Part shown: positions 1 through 63,775 of the stretch, piece after piece | Layout of the letters: each line of letters opens with the position of its first letter | Position numbering within the stretch: position 1 is the first letter of the stretch | Virus record (IMG/VR): IMGVR_UViG_3300029983_000007 | Coordinates: 62,001 to 126,000 of that record | Direction: 5' to 3' (one strand) | Length of the DNA stretch: 64,000 bases | Notes under the pieces: generated by a model | Databases searched by the model: none | The model's input: the letters and a program-made list of their open reading frames with translations, nothing else | Told to the model about the DNA's origin: nothing | Translations under genes and position numbers: made by a program

Positions 1-108
1 ATCGAATAACATTTTTTTAACATCTTCAGCGCATTTAGGTTCCATTGGAAAAATAACTACAAAGCTACTTGATGATGAATTACCAACAAATCCCGTTCTA
101 ATTTTCAT
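1..108 (-). CDS. NSSSSS-leader family protein, N-terminal part (runs off window)
   Basis: Manual translation MKIRTGFVGNSSSSSFVVIFPMEPKCAEDVKKMLFD; not in ORF track. Confidence 0.85.
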   Translation of the reverse strand, partial: MKIRTGFVGNSSSSSFVVIFPMEPKCAEDVKKMLFD

Positions 109-291
109 ATTTTATCTTTTTTATCATTTAAATCTATTGTAATATCAGATTTTCTAAAAATTGCTTTAATTATTTATGTTATTATACCACCAGTAATAGA
201 AATTAATGAAATACAACCTACAAATATCCAAAATCCTGATGTTACATATTTTAAAAATTATAACATATAATTTTATTATTTTTTTTTTTTG

Positions 292-322
292 CAAATTTAC
301 TAAAATTATTTGATAATACAAA
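292..322 (-). promoter_or_regulatory. Bacteroidota-type primary-sigma promoter
   Basis: TTTG-N19-TAAATTTG on minus strand. Confidence 0.65.
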
Positions 323-989
323 AATTTATTGTCAAATAATTATTATGAATTTTTTTTATCTCACACAATTTATCTTTTCTTTTGTATACAGGATTACACA
401 CTAGGCATATAAGACCGTGTTTTTTTGTATTCCACATCATCTGATAATCACCTTTTTGTTTGCATTTAGGACATGATTCGTTACTTTCTGAACCTATAAC
501 TTGATAATCTAATGAATAATAATCATTATCAAAAGAATAAAATTCAGAGTCTCCATCAAGTAAACTGTTTATGCTATACCATCCATCGTCATTATCGTTA
601 TATTTTTGTAGTATAATTTTAAGTTCTGATTTAGCATCTTCTGATAATTTAGTATTATATTTCCATAAATCCCAATCTTCATTATTACATGTTGAAATTA
701 AATAGCAATCTGCAACTTTTTTTATATAAGTATCATAATTGCAACTTTGAAATGTTATTGCCTGATTCTCATCTAAATTTTGTAAAAAATTTAGATATTT
801 ATCGTGCTCATTTTTTCGATATTCATCCTGTTTTTTATCTCCACCTCCATAATCTCCATAATCTCCATATTCATCATATTTTCTATTAATCATATATGTA
901 GCAAGTTCACGTACACTTTTAAAATTCTTATCTGATATTATAAAACTACTTGATGATGAATTACTAACAAATCCAGTTCTTATTTTCAT
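306..989 (-). CDS. NSSSSS-leader family protein with C-terminal Zn ribbon and RxxKL tail
   Basis: MKIRTGFVSNSSSSSF; CPKC...CLVC; KRKDKLCEI. Confidence 0.85.
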   Translation of the reverse strand: MKIRTGFVSNSSSSSFIISDKNFKSVRELATYMINRKYDEYGDYGDYGGGDKKQDEYRKNEHDKYLNFLQNLDENQAITFQSCNYDTYIKKVADCYLISTCNNEDWDLWKYNTKLSEDAKSELKIILQKYNDNDDGWYSINSLLDGDSEFYSFDNDYYSLDYQVIGSESNESCPKCKQKGDYQMMWNTKKHGLICLVCNPVYKRKDKLCEIKKIHNNYLTINFCIIK

Positions 990-1008
990 TTTCTATTATT
1001 TTCTATTA

Positions 1009-1311
1009 TTAACAATATGTCGTACCAGTTATCAATTCAACTTCACTAATATCAACATTTAATGTGTCTGCTACTAATTTAGATTTTTCTATTATATCTG
1101 ATATCGATGTTGCACTATCACTTAACTCTTCACTTCTTGATATTATATAACCAACAATATATTCGTAATTACTATTTTCAACATTAATTACTTCAATATT
1201 ATTGTCAAATCCTTGTTCAATTTCATCTGTAGTGCAATTTGCTCTTTTGATACCAATTACCACAAAGCTACTTGAACTTGAATTACTCACAAATCCTTTT
1301 CTTATTTTCAT
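1009..1311 (-). CDS. NSSSSS-leader family protein
   Basis: MKIRKGFVSNSSSSSF. Confidence 0.85.
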   Translation of the reverse strand: MKIRKGFVSNSSSSSFVVIGIKRANCTTDEIEQGFDNNIEVINVENSNYEYIVGYIISRSEELSDSATSISDIIEKSKLVADTLNVDISEVELITGTTYC

Positions 1312-1324
1312 ATTTTCTTATTTT

Positions 1325-1786
1325 TTATCCATTTCTACCTGCGCCAAAATAAACTTCTGATTTATTTAAGTCTAACCCTGATTTTTCACTATAAAAAGCA
1401 TTATAAACTTTTTTGTCATTATTCTCAAAGAATGACATATCAATATCATAATCAATATCATCATAATCAGATGTCATAAAATCTGAATCACCTTCATTAT
1501 TGCATATATTAACAACTAAAAATAAATCTTCATCTTTACAATCTTTAGTATCTAACGAAGCATTTGTTTGAAATGACTCTACATAAATTTTATTATTGTT
1601 AAAATGTATATCATAATTACCGCTTTCTTTAATATTAGATAACGTTAATACTTTAACATAATAATCCAATTTAATATTATTATCTTTTGTGTATTGTGTA
1701 AATTCGTTGTAATCATTAATCTTGGCTATACCAACAATAAAACTACTTGATGATGAATTACTTACGAAACCATTTCTTATTTTCAT
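1325..1786 (-). CDS. NSSSSS-leader family protein (start corrected to ATG 1786)
   Basis: MKIRNGFVSNSSSSSF begins at 1786; track extension overlaps the upstream gene. Confidence 0.85.
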   Translation of the reverse strand: MKIRNGFVSNSSSSSFIVGIAKINDYNEFTQYTKDNNIKLDYYVKVLTLSNIKESGNYDIHFNNNKIYVESFQTNASLDTKDCKDEDLFLVVNICNNEGDSDFMTSDYDDIDYDIDMSFFENNDKKVYNAFYSEKSGLDLNKSEVYFGAGRNG

Positions 1787-1799
1787 ATTCTTATTTTTT

Positions 1800-2390
1800 T
1801 TACAATAAATGTGGTCTTGCTTCAGCAATTCCAGCATTTGTTACTTGATACCATTTTGGATTGTATTCAGATAGATTGTTAGCTCCTCCATAAGATAATG
1901 CTGAACGAACTCCATAAATTAATCCTTCTATTACAAATCTTACTCCACCTTTGAATGGTATAGTTGTTGACTCTCCTTCTACATTTCTCTCAGCTTGACC
2001 ATGAACAGTTTTAGTTTCCAATGATGCAGAGCCTCTATAGCGTTTATATAAACCATTAGGACTCTCTATAACCTTACCTGGTGATTCTTCTGTTCCTGCT
2101 AATAGAGAACCTAACATGATTGTTGATGATCCTAATGCAAGAGCTTTAGAAATATCTCCACTTGATCTAATTCCACCATCAGCCATAACTGGTACTGTTG
2201 CTACATTTAAAATTTCTATTAAACTTGTCACATTTGGAACACCAAATCCTGTCTTAATCCTTGTTGTACAAAGAGAATTATGAACAACAATACCATTTAT
2301 ATTATACGAATGTGTTTTTTCTACTGTTAAATCATAAACTTTGCCTGTATAATTCTTTTTCTCAATGCTTTTTATTTCTACTAATTTCAT
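1800..2390 (-). CDS. Split intein C-half fused to C-terminal extein of GuaB/GuaC-family (IMPDH/GMP reductase) enzyme
   Basis: VYDLTVEKTHSYNINGIVVHN|SLCTTRIKTGFG; then ADGGI, KALALG, MLGSLLAGTEESPG, YRGSAS. Confidence 0.92.
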   Translation of the reverse strand: MKLVEIKSIEKKNYTGKVYDLTVEKTHSYNINGIVVHNSLCTTRIKTGFGVPNVTSLIEILNVATVPVMADGGIRSSGDISKALALGSSTIMLGSLLAGTEESPGKVIESPNGLYKRYRGSASLETKTVHGQAERNVEGESTTIPFKGGVRFVIEGLIYGVRSALSYGGANNLSEYNPKWYQVTNAGIAEARPHLL

Positions 2391-2512
2391 ATTATATCTT
2401 TTAATTTTTTAATAAAACTTCCATCATTTATCTCATTCTCCCAAATTCTAATTAATTTAAAATTGTGTTCTAATGCAAATTTATTTTTCTTTATATCTTT
2501 TTCAAATTTCAA
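2387..2512 (-). pseudogene. Internally deleted Vsr-like homing endonuclease relic between intein halves
   Basis: 41-aa frame LKFEKDIKKNKFALEHNFKLIRIWENEINDGSFIKKLKDII; overlaps IntN stop and IntC ATG. Confidence 0.7.
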
Positions 2513-3371
2513 CTAAAAAATATTTATCAGTTAAATTTCCTGCTGGTATCCATTCAGCATACTCTTCAATATTTGATGAGTTAACTAAACCTTTATATTT
2601 TATATTTACAACATAAAATTCATGATTTTTTGTGCATTCTATGCCATTTATAATAATAATTTCCTCATTTCTATCAAACTCTAATTTATTTAATACTTTA
2701 TTGAGTTCTCCATTATGACTATAAACTTCATCTCCAATTTTTACATCAATTATATCAATATATCCTTCTGAAGTTTTAACTTTCATGCTAGGTGTAAAAC
2801 AGCCTCCACCAATACCACATCTTAGTCCATCAGCTCCCCAATTTTGTAAATCAATAGCTGCTTCTGATGTAGCAATATTACCTGCAATTATATCCACTCC
2901 TAAATCTAATCCTTTAATTGCTTCGATTGCTTTTTTTACATTTATGTGATGACCATGTGCAACATCAATAAGAATAACATTTACTCCTGCTTCAATTAAT
3001 GATTTGGATCTTTCTAAAAAATCTCCGTTTGAACCTACTGCTGCCATTACTGGAATTTTGTGCCTTATTTTATCTTGATTGAAAGGATCATATGAACTAT
3101 TCTCAATACTTGTAATTAATTTTTTAATTTCATTTGCCTGTTCTTCAATAGACATAAATCTATGAATACATCCTACTCCTCCTAATTGAAACATTTTAAA
3201 TGCCATTTCATGTTCACAAACTGTGTCCATGGGTGATGCTACTAATGGTATCATCAACTCAAAATTTGTCGATAATTTTGTTCTTAAACTAATTTTATTT
3301 CTATGTTTAACTTCACTGTAAAATGGTATGAGTTGAATATCATCATACGTTAACGCTATGTTATTTGTCAT
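2502..3371 (-). CDS. N-terminal extein of GuaB/GuaC-family enzyme fused to split intein N-half
   Basis: LTYDDI, SPMDTV, GGVGCIHR, IDVAHGH, AGNIAT, GIGGG|CFTPSMKV...CTKNHEFYV. Confidence 0.92.
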   Translation of the reverse strand: MTNNIALTYDDIQLIPFYSEVKHRNKISLRTKLSTNFELMIPLVASPMDTVCEHEMAFKMFQLGGVGCIHRFMSIEEQANEIKKLITSIENSSYDPFNQDKIRHKIPVMAAVGSNGDFLERSKSLIEAGVNVILIDVAHGHHINVKKAIEAIKGLDLGVDIIAGNIATSEAAIDLQNWGADGLRCGIGGGCFTPSMKVKTSEGYIDIIDVKIGDEVYSHNGELNKVLNKLEFDRNEEIIIINGIECTKNHEFYVVNIKYKGLVNSSNIEEYAEWIPAGNLTDKYFLVEI

Positions 3372-3390
3372 TCTTTATTTTATTTGTTTT

Positions 3391-3846
3391 TTATTTGTTT
3401 TTTGGTAGTAATAATAACTTTAGATATCTACTATTCAAATCAACACTATTGTTCATGTGTGATAATAATATTGGATGTAATTTATAACTTAAATCTGAAT
3501 CAGATATTACATCAAAGTCACCAATGAATTTTTTAAAGTTTTTCATTACACTTTTACTATCACGTATGTCAGAATTTAATATGAAATTTAGAATATTTAG
3601 AATTTCATATTCATCATTATCAATTTTCCACATTTTACAATATTCTGACCAAAAATCAGCACTATAATCTATTCTTTGTGACCTATATTTATTTTTAACT
3701 TCACTTATAAATTCATTTTTACCCAATTTATTAAAAAAAGATGTAGTCTTTTCTATTAAATAATCAGGTGATGTAGTTATAATTTTATTATCATTTAACA
3801 TAATTCCAAGATAATAAAATACATTATATGCTTGATTTTTAGTCAT
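3391..3846 (-). CDS. hypothetical protein
   Basis: 151 aa ORF in operon-like run. Confidence 0.6.
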   Translation of the reverse strand: MTKNQAYNVFYYLGIMLNDNKIITTSPDYLIEKTTSFFNKLGKNEFISEVKNKYRSQRIDYSADFWSEYCKMWKIDNDEYEILNILNFILNSDIRDSKSVMKNFKKFIGDFDVISDSDLSYKLHPILLSHMNNSVDLNSRYLKLLLLPKNK

Positions 3847-3852
3847 AATTTT

Positions 3853-4245
3853 TTAATAGTTATCGTTACTTACCATTTGAATATATGTGTTAATTACTCC
3901 TGTGATACCATATTTTTCAAATTTTTTACGTAATTCTTCTTCTTGTTCTGATGTACGATCTTTAAATTCAATCACTTCTCCGTCATCTAATCTTCCTAAT
4001 GATTCTCCTACTATAAGAGTATTATAGTCTTTTTCTCCAAAATAATTACCATCTACTTCAACACTAAAATCATTGTCAATTTTATTTGAAAAAAATTCAA
4101 ATTTATCATAATCATCTTCAATGTTATCAAATTCTTCGTCTTTAATGTTTAAGAATTTTGCTAACTCATAAATAGTAAGTTTAATTCCTCTTACAACGAA
4201 AGAAGAACTACTTGAATTGCTTACAAATCCACTTCTAATTTTCAT
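3853..4245 (-). CDS. NSSSSS-leader family protein
   Basis: MKIRSGFVSNSSSSSF. Confidence 0.85.
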   Translation of the reverse strand: MKIRSGFVSNSSSSSFVVRGIKLTIYELAKFLNIKDEEFDNIEDDYDKFEFFSNKIDNDFSVEVDGNYFGEKDYNTLIVGESLGRLDDGEVIEFKDRTSEQEEELRKKFEKYGITGVINTYIQMVSNDNY

Positions 4246-4262
4246 ACTTTTTAATTTATTTT

Positions 4263-4703
4263 TTAATAATTTCCTCCACTTTGTATGTGAATGACATCAT
4301 TGTTTACATTTATTCCTGTTTCACACAAATATCCTTCTAATCCGTCTCCAGAATCATCTGATGCAGAGCCTTCATAATAACGATATTCTTTATTTAATAT
4401 TTTCACTAAATCTTCTCTTGGTATGTGAGGATATCCTTGATCAATTATTTCATCTATCATTTCGTCATCTGATAATTTATTACCTGAATCACAATAATTT
4501 TCAAATATATCTTTAATGCTCATTTCTTTAAGATTTCTAATCATCCAATCTGATAGTCCATTTGCAAAGTCAAATAATATTGAATTTTCATTCAAATCAA
4601 ACAACTTCATAAGAGTATCTTTTGATAATTCTTTTTCATTTTTTACAGTAACAATGAAAGAACTACTACTGCTATTACTAACAAATCCATTTCTTAATTT
4701 CAT
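4263..4703 (-). CDS. NSSSSS-leader family protein
   Basis: MKLRNGFVSNSSSSSF. Confidence 0.85.
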   Translation of the reverse strand: MKLRNGFVSNSSSSSFIVTVKNEKELSKDTLMKLFDLNENSILFDFANGLSDWMIRNLKEMSIKDIFENYCDSGNKLSDDEMIDEIIDQGYPHIPREDLVKILNKEYRYYEGSASDDSGDGLEGYLCETGINVNNDVIHIQSGGNY

Positions 4704-5059
4704 GATTTTTTATTTAATAGTTCTGTTATTTTTTTACTATCAGCGACAACAATTTGACCGTCATCTGGTCCACCTTCTACAGTTGCTATTACATATGCAC
4801 TAATTACATCATTTAAATTATCAAAAAAATCATATTCATGATTTTTATCATACTTTTTTGAATAATCATATATTTCTTCATTGTAGAAACCCCCGTCATC
4901 AACTAGCCTTTTTAACAATTCTTTAAATCCATCTAATGGAAAATCTTCATATTCATCAGTGATCTTTTTATAGTCAACAATATCAAGAAAATTCTCAGGT
5001 AATAGAATTACAAAAGACGAGCTACTTGAGTTGCTAACAAATCCTTTTCTTATTTTCAT
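4700..5059 (-). CDS. NSSSSS-leader family protein
   Basis: MKIRKGFVSNSSSSSF. Confidence 0.85.
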   Translation of the reverse strand: MKIRKGFVSNSSSSSFVILLPENFLDIVDYKKITDEYEDFPLDGFKELLKRLVDDGGFYNEEIYDYSKKYDKNHEYDFFDNLNDVISAYVIATVEGGPDDGQIVVADSKKITELLNKKS

Positions 5060-8907: not shown

Positions 8908-9069
8908 ATGAAAACAGAAAGAAACACAAAAGTAATGTCAATAACTATAGATAAGGATGTATATGACAAAATATCAGAATTAGTTAATAACAAATCCAAA
9001 TTTACTGAATGGCTATTCATTAACTATTTAGATAACATCGGAATTGATGTAAAAAATATAAAATTTTAA
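8908..9069 (+). CDS. Small ribbon-helix-helix protein upstream of homing endonuclease
   Basis: MKTERNTKVMSITIDKDVYDKISELVNNKSKFTEWLF; below track cut-off. Confidence 0.7.
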   Translation: MKTERNTKVMSITIDKDVYDKISELVNNKSKFTEWLFINYLDNIGIDVKNIKF

Positions 9070-9070
9070 A

Positions 9071-9934
9071 ATGGATTATTTAAAAATATATAAAAAATTG
9101 ATAACAAATGCAATAGAAAGGACAATTTCTGATAATGAAGTATATGAAAAACATCATATAATATCAAAATGTATATTCAATGATAACTATTCTATATCAG
9201 TATTTAATGATTATTATAAATTAGTCAAATCAAAATATAGTCTTAGTAATGTAGTTAAATTAACACTAAGAGAGCATTATATTTCACATTTATTGTTGGT
9301 TAGAATTTTTGAAAAAAATAAAAATTGTCATTTTAAATTATTATGTGCTGCAAATTTTTTGACCAACAGAACAAAAAATAATAGGGAATATGAATGGCAA
9401 AAGAAAGAATACATTGAGAAATTAAAAATATCTATGACTGGAAAGCCAAGTAGAGCAAAAGGAAAAAAATGGTCAGAAGAATCAAAGAAAAATAAATCAG
9501 GCACAAATCATTATATGTATAATAAAAATTATGATGAACTTTATGGATTAGAAAAATCTCAAGAGTTGAAAGAAAATAGAAGAAATTCACAATTAGGTAG
9601 AATAAAATCAACTGAAGAAAAAAATAAATTATCTAACAGAATATTCACAGAAGAATGGAAAAATAATATATCAAAAAATAAAAAAGGTAAAAAACTATCA
9701 GAAACAAATAAAGATAATATTAAGAAGTTTATGTTAAATCCAGATTTGAACCCGAATGTGGATCAGACATTATATAAATTTTACCATATAGATGGCAGGG
9801 AAATTATATCAAGAAAAATTGAAATGAAAAAAAATTATAATTGTACAGACATACACAAAATAATAAGCGGTATTAGAAAAATTTCTAAAGGATGGAGGTA
9901 TAAAGGAGAAATAATAAAAAAAAGTGATGAATAA
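9071..9934 (+). CDS. Free-standing HNH homing endonuclease with NUMOD3-like repeats
   Basis: YEKHHII...NVVKLTLREHYISHLLL; KGKKWSEESK and KGKKLSETNK repeats. Confidence 0.8.
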   Translation: MDYLKIYKKLITNAIERTISDNEVYEKHHIISKCIFNDNYSISVFNDYYKLVKSKYSLSNVVKLTLREHYISHLLLVRIFEKNKNCHFKLLCAANFLTNRTKNNREYEWQKKEYIEKLKISMTGKPSRAKGKKWSEESKKNKSGTNHYMYNKNYDELYGLEKSQELKENRRNSQLGRIKSTEEKNKLSNRIFTEEWKNNISKNKKGKKLSETNKDNIKKFMLNPDLNPNVDQTLYKFYHIDGREIISRKIEMKKNYNCTDIHKIISGIRKISKGWRYKGEIIKKSDE

Positions 9935-9951
9935 TCATCACTTTTTAATTT

Positions 9952-11031
9952 TTAAATTTTATATAGAGGACAATCACGATTACAACGAATAAGGTTATTT
10001 CTAAAATTAATAGTCTTTTCGTTATTCCAAATATCATCAATAAAATTACCACATTTTAAAACATTTAGTCCTTCTTTCCAATTTTCTGTATTTGGAGTAA
10101 ATGAGCAAGGAAAATAATTTCCTTTGACATCAATATAGCTACTATAACAACTTGACTCACATGGCTCTACACATTGCTTCATTTTGTTTCTGTATTCATC
10201 TGATAATGAGTTATCTGATTCCAAATATTTTAGAAATTTGTGACTACTGCAACTATCAAATCCTATACTTATTTTTTCATCTAATGCAAATTTGCAAAGT
10301 TCATTAAACTTATCCTGTGGTAAAGGGTGAAATCTATTTTCTGCTCTACCTTTAGTTTTTAAACTTAGTAAAACTAATGCGTTAAGATTTTTTAATCTTT
10401 CATCATTTTTACAATCTTTAATTACTTGCATTGTATAGTCAAAATTTTCCAAGCAAATCATATCGTGAATGTTTACTTGTGTCATTCCTCTATCAGTTAA
10501 TTCTTTTATTGCGTTGTAACTATTGTCTTTATTATAAGATGTACCAACTGATACAGCAACTGCTCCCATTGTTTTTGATAATCTATCATACAATTCTGAT
10601 GTCATTCGTGATCCATTTATTGTTACATTAGGAACAACATCTTGAGAGCGAGTATAATCAAAAATATCCCACATATCTGGATTTGAATCAATGTCTGTTA
10701 TTCCAAATGCTACCTGAGTTACAGTTAAAGGAAGCTTAGAAAAAATGTTTTTATATGTGTCTAATGACATATATTCACCATCTTTATTGTTGCTCTTGTA
10801 GCAAAATGAACAGTTTTGTTTACACGCTGTGTCAATTTCAATATCAGCAATTTCAGGTAATCCTATTTCTAAATCACCATCATCATCTTCTGTTTTACCC
10901 CATCTGGCAAAAAACCCTGTTTTTTTGTTAAATAAGAAATTGTAGTTTTCTGATTTTAAAATTTTAACATCTTTATTATCTACAATTAGTGCTTCTTCAC
11001 CGTTTGAAAGTTTTAATTTAGTTTGTTTCAT
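9952..11031 (-). CDS. Radical SAM enzyme with SPASM/twitch-like C-terminal domain
   Basis: CKQNCSFC (CX3CX2C); C-terminal CES...YIDVKGNYFPCSF...CNRDCP. Confidence 0.9.
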   Translation of the reverse strand: MKQTKLKLSNGEEALIVDNKDVKILKSENYNFLFNKKTGFFARWGKTEDDDGDLEIGLPEIADIEIDTACKQNCSFCYKSNNKDGEYMSLDTYKNIFSKLPLTVTQVAFGITDIDSNPDMWDIFDYTRSQDVVPNVTINGSRMTSELYDRLSKTMGAVAVSVGTSYNKDNSYNAIKELTDRGMTQVNIHDMICLENFDYTMQVIKDCKNDERLKNLNALVLLSLKTKGRAENRFHPLPQDKFNELCKFALDEKISIGFDSCSSHKFLKYLESDNSLSDEYRNKMKQCVEPCESSCYSSYIDVKGNYFPCSFTPNTENWKEGLNVLKCGNFIDDIWNNEKTINFRNNLIRCNRDCPLYKI

Positions 11032-20867: not shown

Positions 20868-22742
20868 TTATTTTATTTCCTCAAAATCCACGTCTGTTAC
20901 ATTTTCAGAATCATCTTTTTTGTCAGATGAATTGCTTTCATTCGTTGACTGATTTTTTGATTCTTCATAAAGTTTACCACTAATGTTTTGCCAAACATCA
21001 TTAAGTTCTTTGGTGTATTTATCAATATTATCAACATTTTGAGTTTTGTGAGCTTCTTTAAGATTATCAAGTTTAGAATTCAATTCAGTTTTGTTTTCTT
21101 CATTCAATTTATCACCAAATTCTTCAATTTGTTTTTCAGTTTGAAAAATCATTGAGTCAGCTTGATTCAACTTATCAACTTTTTCTTTTTCTTTCTTATC
21201 AGCATCAGAATTTTGTTCAGCTTCCATTTTCATTCTTTCAATCTCTTCTTTTGTTAGAGATGAATTACCTTCAATCCTAATGTCATTCTTTTTTCCTGTT
21301 GCTTTATCAACTGCAGTAACTGTCAAAATATTATTTGCATCAATTGAAAACGAAATTTCTATTTGCGGTACTCCTCGTCTGGCTGGCATAATTCCATCTA
21401 AATTAAAAGTTCCCAACATTTTATTATCCTTAAACATACTTCTATTTCCAGTTGAAACATTAATCTGAACACCAGGCTGATTGTCAGTGGCTGTACTGAA
21501 TATTTGTGTCTTAGTTGTAGGAATTGTTGTATTAGCCTCTACCATGACACTGGCTACACCGCCCATACTCTCCAGTGAGAAGTTTAAAGCTGTAACATCG
21601 AGTAATAAGATGTCAGTTGTATCACCAGCAAGAACAGATGCTTGTATAGCTGCACCTGATGCAATTGCAGTATCAGGATTAAGTGACTTATTCGCTTTCT
21701 TACCAAAATATTTTTCAATACTTTCTGACAAATATGGAATTCTAGTGCTACCTCCAACAAGTACAATTTCGTCAATATCTGAAACTTTCTTACCACTTTT
21801 ATTCATTGATGATTGAATCAATGATATTGTTTTATCAACATAGAATTGAATCAATTGTTCAAATTTAGATCTTGTTAATTTTTGAACCAAATGTTTAGGT
21901 TGTCCATCTACAGCAGTGATGTATGGTAAATTTATTTCTGTTTGTGTAGTATTAGACAATTCTATTTTTGCTTTTTCTGATGCTTCTGTAACACGTTGTA
22001 GAGCCATTGGATCTTTACGAATATCAACGCCTGTTTCTTTTAAAAATTCATCAGATATAAAATTCACAAGTGCGTCATCAATTAAATTACCACCTAAATC
22101 TAAATCACCATCAGTTCCAATAACTTCAAATAATCCGTCCTCTATATCTAAAACTGAAAAATCACTTGTACACCCACCACTATCAACTATCATATAAAGT
22201 TTACCAGTTTTATCTTTAATATTTAATGATGCTGCTGTTGGTTCAGATATAATTCTATCAACAGTAAATCCTGCTATTTCACCTGCAACTTTTGTACTGC
22301 TTCTTTCATCTGAATTGAAATATGCTGGAGTTGTTATGACCGCATTGGTTACATTTGTTCCAAGGTAATCTTCTGCTGTTTTTTTCATTTTTTGAAGGAT
22401 CATTGCAGAAATTTCTTCTGGTGAATATATTCTTTCACCAATTTTTACACCAGCCTTACCATTATTATCAACTATATCATAAGGACGTTTAAGATGTTTA
22501 ACTTCCTCATAAGTTCTACCAATAAGTCTTTTGATATTAAAAATTGTGTTTTTTGGATTTAATGCTGCTTGTCTTTTTGCAGATTCACCAACTTTAATTT
22601 CTCCTGTTTTTTCATCAAATGATACAATTGAAGGAGTTGATAGCGATCCTTCTGAATTAGGTATGACAATTGTTTGTCCACCTTCTACTATAGATACGGC
22701 TGAATTGTATGAACCTAAATCTATTCCAATAATTTTTCCCAT
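20868..22742 (-). CDS. dnaK: Hsp70 chaperone DnaK
   Basis: IIGIDLG, TPAYF, LVGGSTRIP, GVPQIEISF, C-terminal DVDFEEIK. Confidence 0.97.
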   Translation of the reverse strand: MGKIIGIDLGSYNSAVSIVEGGQTIVIPNSEGSLSTPSIVSFDEKTGEIKVGESAKRQAALNPKNTIFNIKRLIGRTYEEVKHLKRPYDIVDNNGKAGVKIGERIYSPEEISAMILQKMKKTAEDYLGTNVTNAVITTPAYFNSDERSSTKVAGEIAGFTVDRIISEPTAASLNIKDKTGKLYMIVDSGGCTSDFSVLDIEDGLFEVIGTDGDLDLGGNLIDDALVNFISDEFLKETGVDIRKDPMALQRVTEASEKAKIELSNTTQTEINLPYITAVDGQPKHLVQKLTRSKFEQLIQFYVDKTISLIQSSMNKSGKKVSDIDEIVLVGGSTRIPYLSESIEKYFGKKANKSLNPDTAIASGAAIQASVLAGDTTDILLLDVTALNFSLESMGGVASVMVEANTTIPTTKTQIFSTATDNQPGVQINVSTGNRSMFKDNKMLGTFNLDGIMPARRGVPQIEISFSIDANNILTVTAVDKATGKKNDIRIEGNSSLTKEEIERMKMEAEQNSDADKKEKEKVDKLNQADSMIFQTEKQIEEFGDKLNEENKTELNSKLDNLKEAHKTQNVDNIDKYTKELNDVWQNISGKLYEESKNQSTNESNSSDKKDDSENVTDVDFEEIK

Positions 22743-61312: not shown

Positions 61313-63775
61313 TTAAATTTCATATTGTATTTCCAATATTTTATTTCTTTCATAAAATACTATTAGCAATTTGTTTGTATCTTCAAATAATTTTATTTTC
61401 GGAATACACCAACTTACACTATTTTTATTTAAAGATATTTCAGATATTGTGTAATATGTTTTATTAGTATTTAAATCTTTAATGTCAATATTTAATGACT
61501 GCAAATCATCACCATTATAATATATCATCAATTTATTTTCATTTCTATCATAACTTATTTTTATGTTATTTTTATCTAAATTGTAATCAATTATATATTT
61601 TTTAAAATCAAATAATTTAGGATTTTCTACCAATTTTGATTCAATTATTCTATCAGTTATCATTTCAGGAGTTATGTTAATAGAACATTCAAATTGTTTA
61701 TCTGTATCTTTATGCATAGGACACCAATTCCAATCACCTGGATCAAATTTATGAGTATTAAAACATCCATTACAAACATTAAAATTGTGTATATTTATGT
61801 TATTAGTTTTAAACTCACAAAAAGGATTAGAAAAACCTGACATCATTACTACTTTTTTACCTACAGCCCATGCCAACCAACTCAATCCTGAACCAATTCC
61901 AATATAGAATTCACACCATTTTAATTGATTTATTCTGTGCTCAATAGGAAAATCACCAGTGTTATCTATAATATTTTTTAGATTTGTTGATTGCTTACTT
62001 ATTGTCATAACTTTATACCCTTGCGTATTAAGCCAATCAACTAAAATTTGCCATCCTTTATTACTATCTTTACAAGGATAATGCCAATGTTTAGAGTTCG
62101 CAGTTGAGAATTGCCCAATACAAATATATTTTTCTTTAATTGGTCTAACGCCTTCAGGAATTTCAATCTTTGGTATTATTTCTTCATATTCTAATCCAAG
62201 AATATCACTTGCTGTTTTTTGTAATGGTATGGTTTTATAATCAATCGGATTTTTATTACTATCAAATGGTGAATACCATCCAATTTTATATTTAGCATAT
62301 AAATTTTCTGTGTTTGCTTTTCCTGGATCAACAAATGTTATTTCTGGGTATTGTTTTATAAACCAACTATTCCAAAATGTTGAGCACTGAATATTACAAT
62401 TATGTTTTTTTCTAAATTCTTCTACATATGGAAACCATGCTAATGTATCTCCAATTGATTTACTTTCTATTGTTATTAAAACATTTCTATTTGTTAAATC
62501 AAAATCATGTGTAATTAATTCGTTATTATGAAATATATTAATTTTATACTCCTTATAACATTCATTATTTGTACGACACCAATTATTGTTATTTAATGTT
62601 TTTTTGTATATAATTTCTTTTGTATTTTTATCTATTATTTCAACATCAAACTCAGATTTTACATCTCCAAGAATTTCTACATTTGCACCGTTAATAAAAC
62701 TAATATTATAATCATATTGTGGTTCTATTAATTTTTGAATTGTTTTATTAAGATTAAGTGTGTCATTATATTCTGTTGTTAATCTTGATTCAAATGTTAC
62801 ATTATTATCTATTCTTTTAATATTAAAATTATCCAAAATTCTTTTAGAATCTTTATCAACATTCATTGTTAAATATTTAATATTTTTGCATGAATCATAA
62901 GTATCTAAATATGTATTAAGATTATTTAAATAAATAGGCATATTATATGATGTTGCTTCTTTAACAGCTAACGGGTTCAACTCTAATATAGAAGAATGAA
63001 TTAACAAATCAGATGCTTGGTAAAATGTATCAACGTCACTTCTTTCTCCATGTATTATACAATTAATTGGTTTATTATTTAACAAAGGTTTCCAATAATC
63101 TTCAAAATTTTCTGCTTGATTACCAACAAAGTGAAATTGTATTTTATAGTCTTTTAATTTTTCAGCTATTTCAAATACATATCCTTGATTTTTTCCTTTT
63201 GTGAATAACCCAACATTTAAAACATGAAAATACTCAGAATCAAATTTTAATTCGTCAATAGCTAATCCTTTATTTGCTATTAATTTTTCAGATGGATATT
63301 CAATAATAGAAGATGGAATATTGAATTTGTTATATTGTAGTTGTGAATATTTTGATACAAATAAAAATTTATCTGGGAAATATTTTTTTTTGCTAATATC
63401 AAAAGTTGAAGTATGAGTAGTTTCTATTATTTTATATGGTCTGTCATTTCTATATAACCAATTTATATGCTCATTTCTCATTCCAAAAATAAATATTTCT
63501 GGTATTTCTTCCATATGAATAATATCAGGATTGATATTATTAATTATATCTTCAAACAAATCACGCTTTGTTTCATTTTCATTATCTCCAAGCGAAATGA
63601 ATTTATCTCCTAATAACTCAATAAGTCTATTCCTCTGCACAACAAAACTCCAAGAAATTTGTCTATATTCAATAAGATATACATCATTTGTTTTTATTAA
63701 ATATTCTACTCTTTTAAGAGCTACCATCGGAAGTCCTCCTGTAGATCCGTGAGGAATTATTATAAGTATTTTCAT
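61313..63775 (-). CDS. Bifunctional GT4 plus autotransporter O-heptosyltransferase-like (TibC/Aah) glycosyltransferase
   Basis: NVGLFTKGKNQ, ELNPLAVKEA (GT4); SIGDTLAWFPY, SGLSWLAW, CNGCF...WCP...FECS. Confidence 0.8.
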   Translation of the reverse strand: MKILIIIPHGSTGGLPMVALKRVEYLIKTNDVYLIEYRQISWSFVVQRNRLIELLGDKFISLGDNENETKRDLFEDIINNINPDIIHMEEIPEIFIFGMRNEHINWLYRNDRPYKIIETTHTSTFDISKKKYFPDKFLFVSKYSQLQYNKFNIPSSIIEYPSEKLIANKGLAIDELKFDSEYFHVLNVGLFTKGKNQGYVFEIAEKLKDYKIQFHFVGNQAENFEDYWKPLLNNKPINCIIHGERSDVDTFYQASDLLIHSSILELNPLAVKEATSYNMPIYLNNLNTYLDTYDSCKNIKYLTMNVDKDSKRILDNFNIKRIDNNVTFESRLTTEYNDTLNLNKTIQKLIEPQYDYNISFINGANVEILGDVKSEFDVEIIDKNTKEIIYKKTLNNNNWCRTNNECYKEYKINIFHNNELITHDFDLTNRNVLITIESKSIGDTLAWFPYVEEFRKKHNCNIQCSTFWNSWFIKQYPEITFVDPGKANTENLYAKYKIGWYSPFDSNKNPIDYKTIPLQKTASDILGLEYEEIIPKIEIPEGVRPIKEKYICIGQFSTANSKHWHYPCKDSNKGWQILVDWLNTQGYKVMTISKQSTNLKNIIDNTGDFPIEHRINQLKWCEFYIGIGSGLSWLAWAVGKKVVMMSGFSNPFCEFKTNNINIHNFNVCNGCFNTHKFDPGDWNWCPMHKDTDKQFECSINITPEMITDRIIESKLVENPKLFDFKKYIIDYNLDKNNIKISYDRNENKLMIYYNGDDLQSLNIDIKDLNTNKTYYTISEISLNKNSVSWCIPKIKLFEDTNKLLIVFYERNKILEIQYEI

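Follow-up and report, generated by a model that had tools for sequence, protein, structure and literature searches.

Among radical S-adenosylmethionine (SAM) enzymes, anSME acts on whole proteins before they fold, oxidizing a serine or cysteine side chain near the N-terminal region. In the prochlorosin/ProcM system and in families with Nif11/NHLP leaders, one maturase serves many paralogous substrates, which share an invariant N-terminal segment and are hypervariable in the rest of their sequence. The internal proteins of phage T4 (IPI-III) carry a capsid-targeting sequence that the prohead protease cuts off; no radical SAM enzyme is required. Here, we analyze a stretch of 64,000 nucleotides, positions 62,001 to 126,000 of IMG/VR virus record IMGVR_UViG_3300029983_000007 (hereafter, the window). 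It encodes a radical SAM enzyme of 359 amino acids (aa) with a SPASM-like C-terminal domain, together with seven open reading frames (ORFs) that all start with a serine-rich sequence, MK[IL]RxGFV[SG]NSSSSSF, here called the tag. We propose that this one enzyme matures the full set of unrelated, fast-evolving tagged proteins. That it acts on the tagged proteins, and does so within the tag, is given a probability of about 0.72.

Radical SAM enzyme of the window

A first, sequence-only reading of the window had described a CX3CX2C motif and a Cys-rich C-terminal region in the 359-aa ORF, and the sequence of the ORF bears out both. Across 32 homologs, C70 and C77 of the motif do not vary, and C74 is conserved in at least 90%. 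A database search gave 2,327 homologs. The protein scores 31.1 bits against the Pfam Radical_SAM profile (PF04055), above the cutoff of 29.5. Its top phage protein family is phrog_7293 (E = 4e-82), which has no assigned function. In the AlphaFold2 (AF2) model (pLDDT of 93.9), β and α elements alternate to form a partial TIM barrel. When this model was compared to the PDB with Foldseek, more than 200 matches were obtained at an E value of ≤0.001, and the 50 matches listed consist entirely of radical SAM enzymes and the related NifB. The closest solved structures are SkfB (top hit, E = 6.5e-11), SuiB (TM-score of 0.69), TigE, CteB/Tte1186, BlsE, anSME (TM-score of 0.57; root mean square deviation of 4.4), EpeE, and BtrN. 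A search of PDB sequences with the enzyme profile returned spurious pentatricopeptide-repeat (PPR) matches only. Likewise, NCBIfam gave only subthreshold matches (mycofactocin, tungsten-cofactor maturase, and SkfB), with no equivalog reaching its cutoff. The three-cysteine motif, the profile score above threshold, and the fold place the protein in the radical SAM superfamily, and we propose, from its sequence, that it is an active radical SAM enzyme.

The C-terminal part reads ...EPCESSCYSSYIDVKGNYFPCSF...CNRDCPLYKI and contains the Cys-rich segments GFDSC261, EPC291ESSC, GNYFPC309SF, and C350NRDC354PLYKI. Across the family, C261, C291, C309, and one C-terminal cysteine (C354 here) are invariant, and four more cysteines in the tail of the window protein (C287, C295, C327, and C350) are lineage specific. 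The earlier assignment of this region to SPASM stands for its first half: C291-X12-G304-X4-C309 fits the SPASM hairpin CX9-15GX4C, with C291 and C309 invariant and G304 nearly so. It does not stand for the second half, where CX2CX5CX3C and the distal cysteine of SPASM are reduced to C350-X3-C354-PLYKI in this phage. The Pfam SPASM profile (PF13186; cutoff of 21.5) gives 20.0 bits for the window protein and 34.1 bits for a bacterial homolog; on TIGR04085 (cutoff of 27), bacterial homologs reach 35 to 38 bits. Enzymes of the cellular clade and of one phage group (L150 group) have the complete CX2CX5CX3C half, which is reduced in the large-phage clade to which the window belongs. This distribution suggests that the ancestral enzyme was probably a full SPASM protein and that the enzyme of the window phage may be a SPASM-derived, twitch-like form. 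Twitch-type radical SAM enzymes, such as BtrN and SkfB, have a truncated SPASM domain with a single auxiliary cluster. The four invariant noncatalytic cysteines fit one auxiliary cluster of this type, with four further cysteines in the domain of the window protein.

The N-terminal 60 residues are modeled as a five-stranded β domain without helices, in which S27, Y30, N31, F34, G39, R43, W44, and G45 are invariant or nearly so. No RiPP recognition element (RRE; RiPP, ribosomally synthesized and posttranslationally modified peptide) or PqqD-like domain was found in the enzyme, as Pfam at an E value of ≤1 gave Radical_SAM and SPASM only. Across the family, the cluster loop has the form CXnCX2C, with n between 3 and 20, followed by a conserved CYK[SG]N. 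This first spacing is unusually plastic for a single radical SAM family (n of 3, 8, 9, 13, or 20) because a variable loop is inserted after the first cysteine. In the complete T4-like genome IMGVR_UViG_638276010_000001, the enzyme gene (positions 92715 to 93864) is frameshifted in the SPASM region, with three in-frame TAA stops and the C-terminal 56 residues in another frame, and its two tagged genes are intact; this copy may be a pseudogene or reflect a sequencing error.

A conserved N-terminal tag on unrelated proteins

The serine-rich cluster that the sequence-only reading had placed on the same strand, about 5 kb from the enzyme gene, is real. Its seven minus-strand ORFs lie within positions 1 to 5059, and the enzyme gene is located 4.9 kb upstream of the first of them in the sense of transcription, with about 11 ORFs in between. 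The motif had, however, been taken for a leader. It is probably a retained tag, carried by proteins about 90 to 300 aa in length, rather than a cleavable leader of short peptides, since no conserved cleavage site or protease was found.

For 260 distinct tagged ORFs in the fetched loci, the consensus is M-K-[IVTL]-R-x-G-F-V-[ST]-N-S-S-[ST]-[ST]-S-F-[IV]-[IV], and the tag begins at the initiator Met in 257 of them. These ORFs are usually about 90 to 300 aa long (median, about 130) and reach 390 aa. When 238 full-length tagged proteins were compared, conservation ended at residue 18. Each Ser position of the tag is encoded by all six Ser codons (AGY and TCN), so selection acts on the peptide and not on DNA or RNA, and a DNA- or RNA-level motif as the basis of the tag is ruled out. 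Searched against 1.84 billion proteins, a profile of the first 32 residues retrieves at least 25,581 representatives (50%-identity clusters), and almost every match begins at residue 1. A few database proteins have two tag copies or an internal tag start (for example, at residue 119 or 144) and are probably fused or miscalled tandem genes.

Pfam found no domain in 29 diverse long tagged proteins, and NCBIfam, PADLOC, and ESM Atlas returned nothing for tagged proteins. A tblastn search of the phage collection with a tagged protein gave no match, because low-complexity filtering hides the tag and the remainder is too divergent; tags were therefore searched for with degenerate DNA patterns and a tag hidden Markov model. 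In full-text literature searches, neither the tag nor its pairing with the enzyme turned up. Two other interpretations of the motif were rejected. A PP-loop or HAD-like catalytic motif does not agree with protein bodies that are mutually unrelated. Glycyl-radical activation, considered from the resemblance of K-I-R-x-G-F to RVxG[YF], fails on the different Arg register, on the N-terminal position of the motif in small proteins, and on the enzyme being of the SPASM type and not the PflA type.

One tagged subfamily, phrog_7397 (172 aa), is conserved over its full length from the 25%-GC phage of the window to Klebsiella phage Matisse. Its invariant residues (D146, L155-E156-H157, and the last residue, His172) look like a metal or active site in the alignment. 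In the AF2 model of the 172-aa tagged protein, residues 1 to 10 are disordered and therefore accessible, and residues 13 to 20 form strand β1. This model has no fold match in the PDB, and the AlphaFold DB gave uncharacterized relatives only.

Co-occurrence and synteny of enzyme and tag

Records were sampled from either partner. With the tag as the starting point, IMG/VR was scanned for a degenerate pattern, which gave at least 119 stretches, and the enzyme was scored as present when phrog_7293 matched at an E value of ≤1e-10. Of the tag-bearing records, 38 are 100 kb or longer, and 34 of these have the enzyme family, as do all 15 that are at least 90% complete; the four enzyme-negative records are 26 to 40% complete. 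The base rate of an enzyme homolog is 173 in 50,697 phage records. A common lack of this radical SAM clade in genomes with the tag would have spoken against the pairing suggested by the sequence-only reading, and no such lack was seen.

The pair is not tied to one phage lineage. Seven of the 15 complete records are Gp23 positive and eight are Gp23 negative, and the pair was seen in records of 100 to 548 kb and in loci of 22 to 54% GC. Among 50 T4-like genomes sampled via gp23, six have both partners, 44 have neither, and none is discordant, close relatives of the positive genomes being free of both enzyme and tag. The T4-like Slopekvirus phages of Klebsiella and Enterobacter (KP15 and Matisse) encode one enzyme and two tagged proteins; the number of tagged genes is seven in the window phage and one to eight in others. 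Gp23 and terminase families were not found in the 330-kb record, which says nothing on its lineage because the record is only about 46% complete. A control sampled via the PhoH protein of the window reached close relatives only and was not used.

Sampling by the enzyme gave the same picture. Across 80 loci, strictly matched tags lie within 10 kb in 63; with alternative start codons and a Phe16-to-Tyr change allowed, 74 loci have tags in this range. A tag is present anywhere in the record for 76 of the 80 (two of them beyond 10 kb), and the other four are small fragments. Every strictly matched tag in these loci (231/231) lies on the strand of the enzyme gene. In 53 loci, the tag closest to the enzyme gene is downstream of it, and in 10 it is upstream; the median gap is 662 nt. 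In many records, the first tagged gene begins within 50 nt of the enzyme stop codon. Apart from the tagged genes, the enzyme gene has no conserved neighbors: no protease, transporter/exporter, or nucleotide-metabolism partner recurs beside it. In addition, variation in the tag parallels that of the enzyme: T9/T14 tags accompany enzymes of the full-SPASM clade, and S9 tags accompany those of the reduced clade.

The pair extends to bacteria. Among GTDB genome contigs, the tag was found in 69 stretches, with the enzyme within the fetched 8 kb in 36. Where the contig comes from an isolate or is of megabase scale, the enzyme gene is directly preceded by one tagged gene of 137 aa, which overlaps its start. 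Carriers include Acetatifactor muris DSM 23669, Veillonella parvula, Lachnobacterium bovis DSM 14045, Sulfuricurvum, and a 1.47-Mb Acidobacteriota contig.

Predicted complex and proposed mechanism

To model the complex, the enzyme, two 4Fe-4S clusters, SAM, and residues 1 to 32 of a tagged protein were supplied. Three runs scored 0.84, 0.83, and 0.85, compared to 0.02 for the best control. Of 80 solved complexes, 58 reach the mark used for this score, as do 2 of 110 mismatched pairs; this calibration is only rough here because an alignment and small molecules were supplied. In the model, tag residues 1 to 21 and 24 touch the N-terminal hairpin (residues 38 to 51) and the barrel of the enzyme, and enzyme residues 38 to 45 and 48 to 51 are part of the predicted interface. 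This interface contains 23 of the 32 invariant enzyme residues (odds ratio of 20). The sequence-only reading had asked for such a model of enzyme plus leader and had suggested that one enzyme serves many Ser-rich-leader substrates. Co-occurrence, synteny, the gene overlap in bacteria, and the complex model all support this suggestion, and a link that was originally one of proximity only now has four independent lines of evidence.

We consider that modification would take place inside the tag, because nothing downstream of it is conserved and the model puts it in the active site. In the mechanism that we propose, the unfolded N terminus of a new tagged protein (residues 1 to about 21) would bind the β domain and thread into the partial TIM barrel. 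SAM would then be cleaved by the CX3CX2C cluster to yield a 5'-deoxyadenosyl radical, which would take a hydrogen from a tag residue, with invariant N10, S11, S12, and S15, or F7 and F16, as candidates. At least one auxiliary Fe-S cluster (C261, C291, C309, and C354) would finish the reaction. The product could be formylglycine made from Ser, by a dehydrogenation of the anSME/BtrN type; an intratag C-C or C-O crosslink via F7, F16, N10, or Ser; or an epimerized residue, as made by EpeE. Thioether formation is excluded as the general chemistry, as the tag has no Cys.

Several observations weigh against this interpretation. The complex score is the model's own confidence, and the overlap between interface and invariance is partly expected, since a conserved barrel lines any substrate site. 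The tag lacks the Cys, the Trp, and the Lys-Trp pair of characterized SPASM crosslinkers, and known chemistry therefore does not map onto it. Because tag residues 13 to 20 are part of strand β1 in the folded 172-aa protein, the enzyme would have to act before folding. In the window and in Slopekvirus, the enzyme gene and the tagged genes are not adjacent but 4.9 kb and about 20 kb apart, respectively. Finally, the six T4-like positives belong to one clade (Slopekvirus-like) and therefore count as one event.

The same evidence can be read in other ways. The tag could be a docking leader only, with the enzyme modifying the variable body, as RiPP maturases do on hypervariable cores. A conserved leader followed by a variable body does resemble RiPP systems in which one enzyme serves many precursors, and co-occurrence and synteny fit this arrangement equally well. 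We nevertheless regard it as improbable: with conservation stopping at residue 18 in the 238 proteins, the bodies share no acceptor residue, the complex model puts tag residues 1 to 21 in the conserved barrel, the enzyme has no RRE-type leader-binding domain, and the substrates are proteins of 90 to 300 aa, not peptides.

Binding of the tag, as the complex model predicts it, would also be expected if the tag were a sorting or stability signal (for capsid packaging and injection, for export, or as a degron) and the enzyme-like protein were its receptor or gatekeeper, with chemistry secondary. An invariant N-terminal tag on clustered, hypervariable small proteins recalls the T4 capsid-targeting sequence. 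Catalysis, however, is favored by Fe-S ligand cysteines that are invariant in all members of the family, those of the reduced-SPASM clade included; the pair is also found in bacterial defense islands, where there is no capsid; and the tag has no signal-peptide character. A signal of this kind is quite unlikely.

Least likely of all is a nonprotein substrate (a nucleotide, DNA in hypermodification, or a cofactor) for an enzyme that merely shares an accessory region with the tagged genes: radical SAM enzymes in phage thymidine hypermodification (PMC8989533), a DNA modification of unknown nature reported for Slopekviruses (PMC5219037), weak matches of the enzyme to viperin and MoaA-type models, and the 4.9-kb separation in the window would agree with it, but co-occurrence runs in both directions and has almost no exceptions in unrelated phages and bacteria, neighboring genes always share a strand and in bacteria overlap, no nucleotide-metabolism partner is conserved nearby, the closest folds are peptide maturases, the complex model is specific for the tag, and the difference in DNA modification between KP15 and KP27 (PMC5219037) does not track the enzyme, which both encode.

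Bacterial cassettes and a possible role in phage-host conflict

In bacteria, the pair is part of a cassette with the order A, tagged gene (B), enzyme gene, and D, of which A and D are lineage specific. The cassette genes overlap and encode an A protein of about 140 aa, the 137-aa tagged protein, and a full-SPASM enzyme, as in Acetatifactor muris (Table 1). In Firmicutes, D is a protein of about 310 aa with a C-terminal integron-cassette-protein-like domain (PF21648). PADLOC v2 gave no match for proteins A, B, and D and assigned the cassette to no catalogued system; for the enzyme core, it gave only weak matches to pVip models (E = 1.4e-5 for the window and 4e-14 for a bacterial homolog).

The cassettes neighbor genes for Avs-like MBL plus protease/STAND proteins, SIR2 plus HerA, or NACHT proteins, and the phage array of the window lies beside a gene for a Tad4-domain protein. 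These surroundings point to phage-host conflict and suggest a role for the pair in it, with the tagged proteins as likely effectors. The module is thus possibly a missing defense or counterdefense system. More tentatively, and with the balance of probability against it, the enzyme might place a formylglycine aldehyde, a strained crosslink, or D-residues on the tag and thereby arm or activate hypervariable conflict proteins (at least 25,000 clusters), with phage arrays probably used for counterdefense and the bacterial single-substrate form as an immune module of defense islands that no catalog lists yet. If true, arming of this kind would constitute a new class of posttranslational licensing that phages and their hosts have in common.

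Should the pairing hold true, it would open a first functional route into a very large portion of viral dark matter, at least 25,581 unassigned clusters that share one tag. A short, enzyme-modified tag could in addition serve as a handle in protein engineering. The system is directly testable because cultivable Slopekvirus phages carry the pair.

Other features of the window

The features of the window and the bacterial cassette loci are listed in Table 1. An IMPDH/GMP-reductase-like gene lies in the middle of the tagged array, is interrupted by an intein, and is split into two ORFs about 110 nt apart; the intein could be split (trans-splicing) or decayed. A two-gene islet on the plus strand, with reversed GC skew, abuts the enzyme stop codon. 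Its 287-aa ORF has no Pfam match, and its EKHHI sequence recalls HNH homing endonucleases. An HNH gene likewise lies next to the enzyme gene of Slopekviruses, and one phage has its enzyme gene interrupted by a GIY-YIG gene (PMC9960720). The window further encodes a truncated class II HisRS-like core, a full-length Hsp70/DnaK, and a collagen-repeat protein. An identical enzyme protein is recorded on a 711-kb contig, and the window virus is therefore probably a megaphage.

TABLE 1 Locations of the enzyme, the tagged genes, and other features (window coordinates, except where a locus is named)
Feature	Position	Strand	Basis or remark
Radical SAM/SPASM-like enzyme gene, 359 aa, proposed maturase	9952..11031	-	ORF, Pfam, phrog, AF2, Foldseek
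C70-X3-C74-X2-C77 (CKQNCSFC), ligands of the SAM-binding [4Fe-4S] cluster	10801..10824	-	Read from sequence
N-terminal β-domain segment, residues 27-51, S-x-NYN-x-x-F...G-x-F-x-RWG, predicted tag holder	10879..10953	-	Conservation and predicted interface
SPASM-like C-terminal domain, residues 257-359	9955..10263	-	Invariant C261, C291, C309, C354
Tagged protein gene, 119 aa, MKIRKGFVSNSSSSSF...	4700..5059	-	Residues 1-32 are the partner in the complex model
Tagged protein gene, 146 aa, MKLRNGFVSNSSSSSF...	4263..4703	-	Sequence
Tagged protein gene, 130 aa, MKIRSGFVSNSSSSSF...	3853..4245	-	Sequence
Tagged protein gene, 153 aa from tag Met, MKIRNGFVSNSSSSSF...	1325..1786	-	phrog_7397, E = 1.2e-5, positions 1-127
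Tagged protein gene, 100 aa, MKIRKGFVSNSSSSSF...	1009..1311	-	Sequence
Tagged protein gene, 227 aa, MKIRTGFVSNSSSSSF..., C-terminal four-Cys motif	306..989	-	Zinc-ribbon matches weak
Seventh tagged gene, 172 aa, 5' end (36 codons), MKIRTGFVGNSSSSSF..., phrog_7397 subfamily	1..108 (record 61590-62108)	-	AF2 model
295-aa protein gene, C-terminal 90 residues Pfam Tad4 (Type I Thoeris inhibitor), 76 bits	5737-6624	-	Directly upstream of tagged array
IMPDH/GMP-reductase-like gene	1800-3371	-	
ORF with N-extein and intein start (CFTPS...)	2502-3371	-	
ORF with intein end (...VVHNS) and C-extein	1800-2390	-	
Two-gene islet	8908-9934	+	
Truncated class II HisRS-like core, 213 aa	5099-5740	-	
Full-length Hsp70/DnaK	20868-22742	-	666 bits
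Collagen-repeat protein, 1191 aa	51112-54687	-	
Bacterial cassette, Acetatifactor muris	L291, 1064-3865		
Bacterial cassettes, Veillonella parvula	L311, L337, L304		
Bacterial cassette, Lachnobacterium bovis	L331		
Bacterial cassettes, Sulfuricurvum	L325, L330		
Other bacterial cassettes	L359, L336		

Comparison with known systems

Like anSME/AtsB, the window enzyme is a radical SAM protein with a SPASM-like auxiliary-cluster domain, and its Ser-rich target makes Ser oxidation conceivable. However, it is not an anSME. The anSME substrate motif, (C/S)xPxR or C/S-x-(P/A)-x-R, is absent from the tag sequence GFVSNSSSSSF, which has neither P nor R; no sulfatase domain was found in the tagged proteins; and no anSME model is among the NCBIfam matches listed for the enzyme. 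Unlike anSME, the window enzyme also has an extra N-terminal β domain and a reduced second SPASM half. If the pairing is real, the enzyme would join anSME and QhpD as a further radical SAM enzyme that matures whole proteins, in this case phage encoded and with many unrelated substrates.

The RiPP maturases SkfB, SuiB, CteB/Tte1186, and EpeE (YydG) are the best structural neighbors. As in their systems, the gene of a proposed substrate stands beside the enzyme gene, and the proposed substrates have a conserved N-terminal recognition sequence. The window system differs in that an RRE/PqqD-like domain and a conserved gene for a protease or exporter are absent, in proposed substrates of 90 to 300 aa whose conserved part is itself the likely modification site, and in a tag without Cys and without a Lys-Trp pair. 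The short precursor, the cleavable leader site, and the nearby conserved protease or transporter of a canonical RiPP cluster were not found.

T4 IPI-III resemble the tagged proteins in architecture only, as clustered, fast-evolving small proteins with a short invariant N-terminal sequence. The sequences are unrelated, and T4-type genomes without the enzyme are also without the tag. With ProcM-type systems, the locus would share a single maturase, an invariant N terminus common to the substrates, and hypervariable remainders. It differs from them in that the enzyme is a radical SAM protein and not a lanthionine synthetase, that the carriers are phage genomes and defense islands, and that the proposed substrates are full-size proteins, with a tag of 16 to 18 residues counted from Met1. 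Fitting neither anSME, the RRE-dependent RiPP maturases, nor canonical RiPP clusters, the system would work like a radical SAM maturase that serves many leader-sharing substrates.

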